A DNA stretch of 64,000 nt from Octopus bimaculoides. Its lineage: Eukaryota. The first letter of the stretch is position 1; each line of letters opens with the position of its first letter. Shown here one piece after another: positions 56,101 to 59,100 of this stretch. The DNA lies in the NCBI RefSeq assembly GCF_001194135.2, contig NC_068999.1, forward strand, positions 54,375,055-54,439,054, in the 5' to 3' direction. The notes under the pieces are model-generated. The model saw only the letters and a program-made list of their open reading frames with translations, was not told the DNA's origin and made no database searches. Made by a program: the position numbers and the translations under genes.

Positions 56101-59100
56101 GTTCTGACTGCTCCATTAGGAATGACTTAGAAGAAAACAACAACAGGACAAAGTTTCGTCTTAAAGGCAGCAAGCTGGTTGAATTGTTAGCGTACCAGGG
56201 AAAATGCTTAGTAGTGTTTTGTCCATCTTCATGTTCTGAGTTCAAATTCCACCAAGGTTGACTTTGCATTTCATCCTTTTGGGATCGATAAAATAAGTAC
56301 CAATTGAACACTTGGGTCAATGTAATCGACTTGGCCCTTCCCTCAAACCTGCTGGCCTTGTGTCAAAATTTGAAACTAAGAAGAGCATCCAGCTGTAAAA
56401 ATCCTGCCAAAACAGTCACAGAAATCTGGTGCAGGCTTCTACCTGGTTGGCTCTTGTGAAACCATCCCAACCATGCTAGTATGGAAGGCAGACATTAAAC
56501 AACAACAATGATGATGATAATTAAGCCAAATATATTGTCTTCATTTCTTCAAAATTGCATCTTTCTTTAGTTTTCTTGATCTTAACTAATCTAACAATTT
56601 TATTCTCAAAATCCTCAGATTCAGAAAGTCGTTGTGGCTCTTGGAGATTACATGGATGCAAGATGCCATGCTTGTATTGGTGGAACAAATGTTCATGATG
56701 ATAGGTTACAATTATGTGAAGGTGTTCACACGGTTGTTGGAACTCCTGGACGTGTTAGTGATATAATCCATCGAAAATGGCTTGGTAAGTTTACTGATTA
56801 TCACACCATGACTATTTTCTCTTTCAGTAAGGTGCCAGTGGATGATCTCACTCGAGCAGTCACCTTTCTGCATGGGCCAAAGATTCTCTTAATCGAGTCA
56901 TAGAATTCATATGCTTTGTTCTTGACTGCAAAACATGTATGTCTGTGTGTATGTGCATATAAAAGCATTTTTGATGTATAACAAAACAAAAATGACCTAA
57001 AGTGTTTTAAATGACTATCATGAGACTTTATTTTCCACAGTGTCTTTGTTTCAACACAATCTCAAATCAGCTTAGCTGCCAAACAAATGCAACTCTGAAG
57101 TTTAAAAACCTAATTTCAAATATTTCACTCAGAGACTTTAGTTGCCAGTTGTAGATAGTTGCAGATAAACTTTCACTGCAGCACAGTGAAAACTACCGTT
57201 TTTGGATTAAAGATTTGACTTGAATTCAGTTATTGTTTTGCCCTAGGTGGGTCCTGATCTAGATGGCCTAATCAAAACATTCCTACCATGAGCATTCTGT
57301 CTTTTATTTAAACATAATGTATTTGGGACTAAATTATATAATGTATCCCTTTTTATAATGGTAGGGTGTAATTGGAGGAAGATTTAGTTGGTGTTTGTAA
57401 CAAGTTGAGCGACTGCATAGAGGCCTTGTTGGCTCCATCTGGATTCAGTAAAGTAAGCTGGTGACCATCCTGACTAGACCATCCTTCTCTTGCATTTCTG
57501 TTGTGACTGCTGTAATGTTTGTATTTATGGATCCATTTTATAAGGAAGAACAAAAATGACAGGGTAACATGTTGAAAGTTTTTTTTAACCAAGATGGTGA
57601 GTGAATATTGAGGTAATATGTTGAAATTTACTCTATAGCTAAATAAACTTAAGATGCTTTTTTTCCTAGACTTAATACAGTTGATGTTTCAATGATTTAC
57701 ATAACTTTTTTTCTTTTGATTTTTAGTAACTTCCCATATTAAAATATTTGTCCTTGATGAAGCAGATGAGATGTTGTCCCGAGGTTTCAAAGATCAAATC
57801 TACAGTGTTTTTAGATACATGCCCCAGAATGTTCAGGTTAGTCAGTTTATTTACTTCCAACTCTAATCATTGACAGTCTGTCTTGTCACACTGGTTTATG
57901 AGTCAAATGTTGCTGCAGCCTCAGTCATGTCAGTTACAGCAAAGCACATGTGTTTAGCTTTTCTAGAGGTCAAACATTCTGCAGTTACCTGAGATTTGTG
58001 AGTTAAATTTAGATAAATTAAACTCTCTGATACACTTATGCATATATGTAAGAGAAATAGACTTAAATTTTTTTTTTTTAAAGTACTAATGCAAATAATG
58101 GGTATGGACAAAATCTAAAAGAATATGATCGTGTTAATGCAGTAAATTGGCAGAGTTGGTGAAACATTAGGTAGGATGCTTTGAATTTGTTCCAACTCTG
58201 TGATCTGAGTGTGAATTTATTTAAGGTCATCTTTACCTTTTGTTCTTTTGGGATTGAGATAAAATACGATAGGACAGTGAGTTGATGGAGTTTCTAGTGT
58301 CAGTTTCTGTTCTGACTGCATTATAAGTTCAAATCCTGAACCATCACTGAAAAAAAAATTCTATTTCTATTAGGAGTTGCAACTGACAAAGTTTGCTTGG
58401 CAATTACATGAGTCTGGGTTTGATCCCTCTGCACAATGCCTTGAGGAAAGGCTTTGGGAAGACAAACTGTGTGAAACCCTTCAGTCTATGTACTTGTTCT
58501 TTAGTGTTAGACTTAATTTATCATCTTGTTTAACTCTTAAATTCCTGTAGTGCTTTCATTATAATCATTTTAATGTCCACTTTTCTATGCTTGCATAGAT
58601 CAAAAGAAATTCATTAAGGCAGCCTGATGCATTTCTTGTTGCCAACCTTCACCTATTTCCAAGCATGGTTATAATCCTAGTTTATCAAGTAATGAACAGC
58701 CCAAACATGGTTAAAGGAAGGTTTTTGTTTTAAAGATTTACTTTTCTTTTTTATGATGTCTGAATATCTTGGGAATATTGTGATGATTTATTATTACATG
58801 CCTTAGACATTAGTATACCACTAAATACTGTCTTCATGTAGTGCTCAAAAATACAGTGCATTGTAGTGCTTTCCTGCTAATGATTGGATTTGTGCATTTT
58901 GTTAGTATTCAGTGACATCATTTCTTGTAGAAGACCTTTGTTTACAGCAGTGAGCACAATATTATTGGTACCTCTACACTGAATCTGCATATCAGAGTCA
59001 ACTGAGAATTAGTAGTTAACTGCTTTTACTAGGTACAAAATGCAGTAATGTGGTAGTAGCATGTACCCTTTCAATCTCAGATAATTATTACCATTTCTGC

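Follow-up and report, generated by a model that had tools for sequence, protein, structure and literature searches.

LOC106875421 of Octopus bimaculoides, hereafter copy A, encodes an eIF4A1-type protein whose inhibitor pocket reads T158 P159 S163 F192 Q195 S198 V199 (human numbering, used throughout). The gene is intact, has 9 exons, and occupies positions 53705–63414 on the forward strand of the window, by which we mean the whole 64,000-nucleotide stretch analyzed (C19:54375055–54439054 in the 2.34-Gb O. bimaculoides assembly). We think it likely that copy A is the functional, divergent A member of an ancient head-to-tail gene pair, and that drift, neutral or compensated, at surface sites that tolerate change produced its pocket, rather than selection by a toxin. 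Pocket variation of this kind predicts how organisms respond to rocaglates and pateamines, which are studied as anticancer, antiviral, and antiparasitic agents. New here are the cephalopods themselves and the pattern TPSFQV with a residue other than Asp at 198, which are missing from the published catalogue; the loss of Asp198, a residue called highly conserved in the literature, from every coleoid cephalopod sampled; and an ancient syntenic eIF4A pair with unequal rates in cephalopods. Free variation at 163, including natural F163S, was already known; no new mechanism is revealed, and a toxin arms race is unsupported.

Several lines of evidence identify the gene. Probed with eIF4A1 and eIF4A3, the window yields eight exon matches in colinear order, with AG/GT borders and one frame ending in ADLI and a stop codon, and all 9 exons of copy A have GT-AG borders (Table 1). 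A protein search returned XP_014779042.1 (‘uncharacterized protein LOC106875421 [Octopus bimaculoides]’, 401 aa) at 100% identity to the translation. The protein matches the Pfam domains DEAD (PF00270, 3e-46) and Helicase_C (PF00271, 8e-34), and a pattern search shows that it keeps the Q motif and motifs I, Ia, Ib, II (DEAD), III (SAT), IV, V, and VI. Its top solved relatives in the PDB are human eIF4A1 chains (HMMER, E 7e-198, 660 bits, vs. 587 bits for eIF4A3), with 75% identity to human eIF4A1 over 400 aligned residues, and it clusters with animal eIF4A1-type proteins in our tree. Judged by its sequence, copy A is an eIF4A1/2-type DEAD-box helicase gene, closer to eIF4A1/2 than to eIF4A3. 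From the intact motifs and a ratio of nonsynonymous to synonymous divergence (dN/dS) of ~0.08, we infer that it retains helicase activity and a role in eIF4F, and so still acts in translation initiation.

A preliminary description, made by a model from the letters alone, had proposed that the rocaglate pocket of this gene is rewritten by F163S, D198S, and I199V with P159 and Q195 retained, and as a reading of the residues this is correct. The sites lie in frame, as AGT within TPGRV-S-DII in exon 4 and as AGT GTT within KDQIY-S-V in exon 5, and HMMER alignment to solved human eIF4A1 chains places S, S, and V of copy A opposite F163, D198, and I199, with P159, F192, and Q195 identical. Being none of Phe, Tyr, or His, residue 163 is unable to pi-stack, while T158, P159, F192, and Q195 are kept (pattern TPSFQ). 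A sequencing slip from Phe at codon 163 is unlikely, because a change between AGT and TTY takes two base changes. The hippuristanol determinants V338, Q339, and G363 and the surroundings of motifs V and VI (ARGID, HRIGRGGR) are the same as in human, again as first described. Of the 45 residues found in octopus copy A alone, 6 fall within 163–172 (S163, I165, H167, K169, W170, and V172), and M165I hits a position that is invariant in 164 other sequences; positions 167–175 are variable across animals generally. Residues 163–172, which form the helix past motif Ib, correspond to window positions 56757–56784 plus 57727–57735.

Copy A is not the only translation-type eIF4A gene in the genome. A whole-assembly search found a second eIF4A1-type gene on the same strand, copy B (LOC106875415, XP_014779026.1, 403 aa), whose first matched exon lies ~17 kb beyond the end of copy A and which starts ~12 kb past the window end. 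The two genes have equal exon sizes (133/140/166/110/144/138/170/145), and their proteins share 77.5% identity across the entire alignment. With TPGRV-Q-DMI and KDQIY-S-V, copy B is likewise without Phe163 and Asp198. Since its protein is almost identical to that of O. vulgaris, copy B is probably the main translation eIF4A. The eIF4A3 orthologue lies on a different chromosome (C11:54986426–54999354, reverse strand) and has a canonical pocket (GRVFDMI and EQIYDVY, that is F, D, and V), so only the genes of translation type carry the pocket change. The 35 kb downstream of the window, between and around both eIF4A genes, contain 3691 N.

The preliminary description had put forward an alignment of positions 163, 195, 198, and 199 across relatives as a check, and this alignment shows Asp198 to be lost in all the coleoids sampled. 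We set 164 relatives from outside the cephalopods, almost all of them eIF4A1-type proteins of animals with a few plant or multi-domain entries, against 17 cephalopod eIF4A1-type sequences from octopods and cuttlefish-type animals (coleoids). Position 163 is Phe in 86 of the non-cephalopod sequences, Tyr in 61, His in 9, Met in 3, Gln in 2, Asn in 2, and Ser in 1, whereas none of the 17 cephalopod sequences has Phe or Tyr there: the residue is Ser in Octopus A, Leu in Sepia-type A, Gln in octopod B, and His in Sepia-type B. By entropy this position ranks 31 of 377 core positions. Position 198 is Asp in 162/164 non-cephalopod sequences, the two exceptions being multi-domain or misaligned entries, and in 0/17 cephalopods, which have Asn in Sepia A and B, Ser in Octopus A and B, and Gly in Argonauta B. 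Position 199 is Val in 154/164 non-cephalopod sequences and in 17/17 cephalopods. Among the three sites only 198 is thus near-invariant. Among structured positions, the only ones at least 95% conserved elsewhere and changed in all cephalopods are A57L, D198, R233K, and C264.

These counts change how the pocket should be read. I199V does not belong to any rewriting, as Val is the normal invertebrate state, the Ile/Val alternation is considered neutral (PMC10250355), and eIF4A3, with Val at the equivalent of 199, is still clamped by rocaglates (PMC10187672). Nor is the pocket change peculiar to a relaxed paralog, as had been suggested, since the slowly evolving copy B has Q163 and S198 and all 17 cephalopod sequences are without Phe or Tyr at 163 and without Asp198. 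We rejected the idea that Asp198 is universally invariant: yeast eIF4A has Gln there (PDB 1FUU), and among 84 deep eukaryotic eIF4A-like representatives that keep TP.FQ, position 198 is Asp in 36, Glu in 22, and some other, non-acidic residue in 26. At the nucleotide level, codon 198 is GAY (Asp) in other animals, AAT (Asn) in Sepia A and B, AGT (Ser) in Octopus A and B, and a Gly codon in Argonauta B, a trail in which the first step is G-to-A and each later step A-to-G. The step from Asn to Ser arose in both octopus paralogs, with no sign of gene conversion.

The duplication that produced the pair appears to be old. In the maximum-likelihood tree the cephalopod clade (support 100/99) splits into an A clade (87/82), uniting octopus A with the cuttlefish-type transcript, and a B clade (97/97) of Sepia B, Argonauta, O. 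vulgaris, and O. bimaculoides B. The Sepia-type A cluster includes CAE1170747.1 of Acanthosepion (Sepia) pharaonis, and on scaffold CAHIKZ030000371.1 of that species the A gene (269.8–340.3 kb) lies upstream of the B gene (CAE1170749.1, 386.5–393.2 kb) on a common strand, in the same order as in Octopus. The 10 kb around the Sepia B gene hold no A-type exons, the A gene lying ~46 kb upstream. A recent, octopus-only duplication is rejected by an approximately unbiased (AU) test (P = 0.0009 against grouping octopus A with octopod B) and by the A-then-B order in S. pharaonis. As read from these sequences, the A/B duplication predates the octopod–decapodiform split, because the tree, the AU test, and Sepia synteny all place it there. 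Gene conversion between A and B was also considered as the source of the shared Ser198 and rejected, as there is no tract of raised identity: where residues agree, third codon positions match at a saturated 0.43 overall and at 0.54 within exon 5. A protein search with copy B as query returned no further cephalopod clusters.

The two copies have evolved at different rates. Terminal branches measure 0.47 for octopus A, 0.12 for Sepia-type A, and at most 0.03 for the B genes, and Tajima relative rate tests of octopus A against Sepia-type A gave 37 vs. 8 (P = 1.5e-5) and 30 vs. 11 (P = 0.003). These tests, together with the discovery of the tandem copy B, bear out the earlier suspicion that the gene is an eIF4A paralog with a raised rate. 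Nei–Gojobori dN is 0.135 between A genes vs. 0.064 between B genes; with dS above 1.7, dN/dS is ~0.08 for A and ~0.04 for B, and values per branch are unreliable because dS is saturated or undefined. The pace of octopus A is about double that of B, and M165I and several substitutions in the helix that follows motif Ib are among its changes, yet to judge from the codons the gene is clearly under purifying selection and hence no pseudogene. A-type transcripts are also present in Logan RNA-seq assemblies from cuttlefish-type samples.

Published work on the drug pocket gives these residues a pharmacological meaning. Obermann et al. (2023) surveyed 365 eIF4As at positions 158, 159, 163, 192, 195, and 199 and found 35 patterns with 14 different residues at 163; their published pattern tables contain no cephalopods and no TPSFQV (PMC10250355). 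In that survey Leu and Ser at 163 are classed as resistant, TPSFQI being the pattern of Leishmania and Clavispora lusitaniae; the sensitivity of the Q163 mutant is unclassified, with docking predicting some binding; all isoforms are resistant only in Aglaia and Ophiocordyceps; and resistance is judged to have arisen for the most part by chance, as a side effect of the tolerance of position 163 (PMC10250355). On a human scaffold, the thermal shift (dTm) with silvestrol was 9.74 °C for wild type, 9.33 °C for F/V, 6.41 °C for H, 5.56 °C for Q, 5.40 °C for S, 5.02 °C for G, and 2.12 °C for L, values that native context changes, as the authors stress (PMC10250355). The link drawn in the preliminary description between loss of the aromatic residue at 163 and rocaglate insensitivity is upheld by these measurements (5.4 °C for F163S vs. 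9.7 °C for wild type).

The resistance to pateamine that it expected does not follow, however. Pateamine A clamps regardless of the residue at 163, with a dTm of 9.5 °C for F163S, and Leishmania major, which has Ser163, is pateamine A-sensitive and killed by it (Heliyon 2024, PMC11259845). Position 198 affects both drug classes: D198A cuts dTm by ~3–5 °C for each of them, in a study that terms D198 highly conserved (PMC11259845), and desmethyl-pateamine A touches F163, Q195, and D198 (PMC10187672). The double mutant F163L/I199M blunts DMDA-PatA (PMC11369270). The hippuristanol site lies within or next to motifs V and VI, with resistance at V338, Q339, and G363 (PMC2216682). As to sources, terrestrial plants supply the rocaglates and a single sponge holobiont the pateamine (PMC10250355, PMC11259845).

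Several known systems resemble copy A in part. Among them are the eIF4As of Leishmania spp. and C. lusitaniae (TPSFQI, natural F163S), which share Ser163 and the retained T158, P159, F192, and Q195; these organisms are rocaglate-insensitive and pateamine A-sensitive, F163S giving the reduced silvestrol shift cited above (PMC10250355, PMC11259845). Octopus A differs from them in Val199 (TPSFQV), in having no Asp198, in M165I, in being an animal protein, and in having a second translation-type paralog with Q163. Aglaia (F163L/I199M) and Ophiocordyceps sp. BRM1 (F163G) are like the octopus in that no isoform of translation type is unaltered and residue 163 is not aromatic. In contrast to Octopus, which has no known exposure, they make or live on rocaglates, and selection is therefore plausible there; Octopus has Ser and Gln, not Leu or Gly, and an ordinary Val at 199, not Met. 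Schistosoma, Trichuris, and Hymenolepis (Obermann et al. 2023) have, as cephalopods do, two translation-type eIF4A paralogs per genome that differ at 163, and S. pharaonis, with Leu163 in A and His163 in B, fits the resistant/sensitive dichotomy of those pairs exactly. The cephalopod pair differs from them in being an ancient tandem duplicate of which both members lost Asp198, a residue outside the six surveyed positions. Human eIF4A1 (PDB 5ZC9 with rocaglamide A, 6XKI with desmethyl-pateamine A) has the same helicase motifs and hippuristanol site as octopus A, which departs from it by F163S, M165I, D198S, I199V, the rewritten helix 163–172, and a shorter N-terminus.

We propose that the pocket was assembled by drift in the following way. 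Val199 would have been inherited from the invertebrate ancestor. Asp198 would have been lost in a single event, either along the cephalopod stem or ahead of the duplication, and its place is now taken by Asn (Sepia), Ser (Octopus), or Gly (Argonauta). Residue 163 may then have drifted separately in each copy and lineage to its present Ser, Leu, Gln, and His. Drift is favored over toxin defense because residue 163 varies among lineages and between copies, the sensitive His being one of its states, because rocaglates are products of terrestrial plants and pateamine acts independently of 163, and because no paper ties cephalopods to eIF4A clamps.

By analogy with the characterized mutants, rocaglate clamping of polypurine RNA by copy A is predicted to be weak, below the borderline 5.4 °C of F163S alone, because there is no stacking side chain at 163 and no Asp198. 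Pateamine A would be predicted to clamp still, perhaps less tightly, and hippuristanol to bind still. Copy B (Gln163, Ser198) is predicted to behave similarly, and Octopus may therefore have no fully rocaglate-sensitive translation-type eIF4A; in Sepia one copy would have Leu163 and the other His163.

A number of observations weigh against this account or against the predictions attached to it. Asp198 is gone in every sampled cephalopod though near-invariant elsewhere, which is unlike pure drift; its loss may be the trace of a functional change, or a compensatory one, along the cephalopod stem, whose branch is long (0.31). The A clade is moderately supported (87/82), and the branch leading to copy A is long. 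The annotated proteins of O. vulgaris and Argonauta hians include B-type sequences only, with no A-type orthologue; other octopods may have lost copy A, or may hold it in unannotated or strongly diverged form. The drug predictions are carried over from point mutants on a human scaffold, and native context may shift the values. Furthermore, Ser (5.4 °C) and Gln (5.6 °C) are borderline between the resistant Gly (5.0 °C) and the sensitive His (6.4 °C).

One alternative to drift is that copy A has become specialized, acting in particular tissues or stages (for example germline or neural) with an RNA-facing surface at 163–172 and 198 that alters its handling of RNA or cofactors, drug insensitivity being a by-product. 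Retention of the tandem pair since before the octopod–decapod split, purifying selection on copy A, and A-type transcripts in the cuttlefish-type assemblies are all consistent with this, as is the concentration of copy A-unique residues within 163–172, including M165I at an otherwise invariant site. Against it, positions 167–175 are variable in animals generally and the catalytic and RNA-binding motifs are all unchanged, and we regard specialization as rather unlikely.

A broader possibility is that coleoids as a whole clade have remodeled the interfacial-inhibitor pocket in both translation-type paralogs, losing Asp198 and carrying neither Phe nor Tyr at 163. We hold this to be unlikely; if true, no animal class before the coleoids would have been predicted to show broad insensitivity to RNA clamps of the rocaglate type. 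Such remodeling could reflect a functional shift in the grip of eIF4A on RNA. Coleoids are heavy adenosine-to-inosine (A-to-I) editors, and the remodeling could also be tied to recoding, as the Asn and Ser codons at 198 and the AGT at 163 are editable to Asp or Gly; codon 198 in its Asn or Ser form and AGT163 could be recoded in this manner. A search for double-stranded RNA near both AGT codons found only one weak, uninformative inverted repeat of 24 nt (71% complementary), and a literature search returned nothing on these two loci or on eIF4A recoding in cephalopods.

That selection made the eIF4A1-type proteins of cephalopods resistant to a natural interfacial clamp, pateamine-like or of unknown kind, met in the diet or the environment, as in Aglaia and its fungal parasite, seems to us quite improbable. 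The idea, also raised in the preliminary description, draws on the absence of an aromatic 163 and of Asp198 from both translation-type paralogs of Octopus while eIF4A3 keeps both, and on resistance of all isoforms being confined to Aglaia and Ophiocordyceps (Obermann et al., PMC10250355). It also draws on Asp198 itself, which touches pateamine analogues, whose loss lowers clamping, and which is replaced in 17/17 cephalopods vs. 2/164 others. However, rocaglates are made by terrestrial plants, and clamping by pateamine A is independent of residue 163. Residue 163 shows no convergence on one state, differing between copies and lineages (S, L, Q, H, including the sensitive His) in the manner of drift at a tolerant site, and at 198 yeast eIF4A has Gln and ~30% of the deep eukaryotic eIF4A-like representatives are non-acidic. 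Exposure is undocumented: a literature search found nothing linking cephalopods with rocaglates, pateamines, or other eIF4A inhibitors.

Finally, the idea that copy A is decaying into a pseudogene, or stems from an error of assembly or annotation, to which the long terminal branch (0.47), the significantly raised relative rate, and the lack of an annotated orthologue in O. vulgaris and Argonauta might point, is very improbable and was rejected given a 401-codon frame open over nine exons with canonical splice sites, dN/dS of ~0.08, intact helicase motifs throughout, and the same class of pocket change in slow copy B and in other cephalopod species.

Table 1. Exons of copy A and other features in the window (window positions), with the tandem copy B downstream of it (C19 coordinates)
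Feature	Position	Strand	Details
Copy A exon 1	53705..53764	+	Carries start codon; exact spliced match of XP_014779042.1; ATG 3 bases upstream of match
Copy A exon 2	54823..54955	+	Q motif (GFEKPSLIQ)
Copy A exon 3	55157..55296	+	Motif I (AQSGTGKT), motif Ia (PTRELA)
Copy A exon 4	56619..56784	+	Motif Ib (TPGRV) and following helix; Ser163 AGT 56757-56759; M165I, H167
Copy A exon 5	57727..57836	+	DEAD (motif II), F192, Q195; Ser198 AGT 57804-57806; Val199 GTT 57807-57809
Copy A exon 6	59118..59261	+	Motif III (SAT)
Copy A exon 7	61030..61167	+	Motif IV (VIFCNT)
Copy A exon 8	63009..63178	+	QxxR, motif V (ARGID), V338/Q339 of hippuristanol site; 95% identity to human
Copy A exon 9	63270..63414	+	Motif VI (HRIGRGGR, with G363), C-terminus ADLI, stop codon
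Copy B	C19:54451431-54468786	+	~12.4-29.7 kb 3' of window end; same strand as copy A; pocket TPQFQSV
Reverse-transcriptase-like open frame	3413-4474	-	Resembles reverse transcriptase fragment
Reverse-transcriptase-like open frame	7895-8575	+	Resembles reverse transcriptase fragment
N run	~27690-27710		Assembly gap or withheld sequence
tRNA-Arg(CCT) gene	28106-28178	+	Rfam 49.9 bits, also ARAGORN
Ser/Thr/Pro-rich open frame	37369-37860	+	163 codons; no Pfam match
N run	41435-41620		Assembly gap or withheld sequence

Elsewhere in the window, a Pfam scan of the other large open reading frames gave a match only at 3413–3889, to RVT_1 below threshold (E 0.003, 17.8 bits); the two reverse-transcriptase-like frames are probably decayed retroelements. 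The Ser/Thr/Pro-rich frame may be an exon of an upstream gene. The tRNA-Arg(CCT) match lies just downstream of a transposase-like open frame (27379–27941) that is broken by an N gap, and could be either a real tRNA gene or a tRNA-derived repeat.

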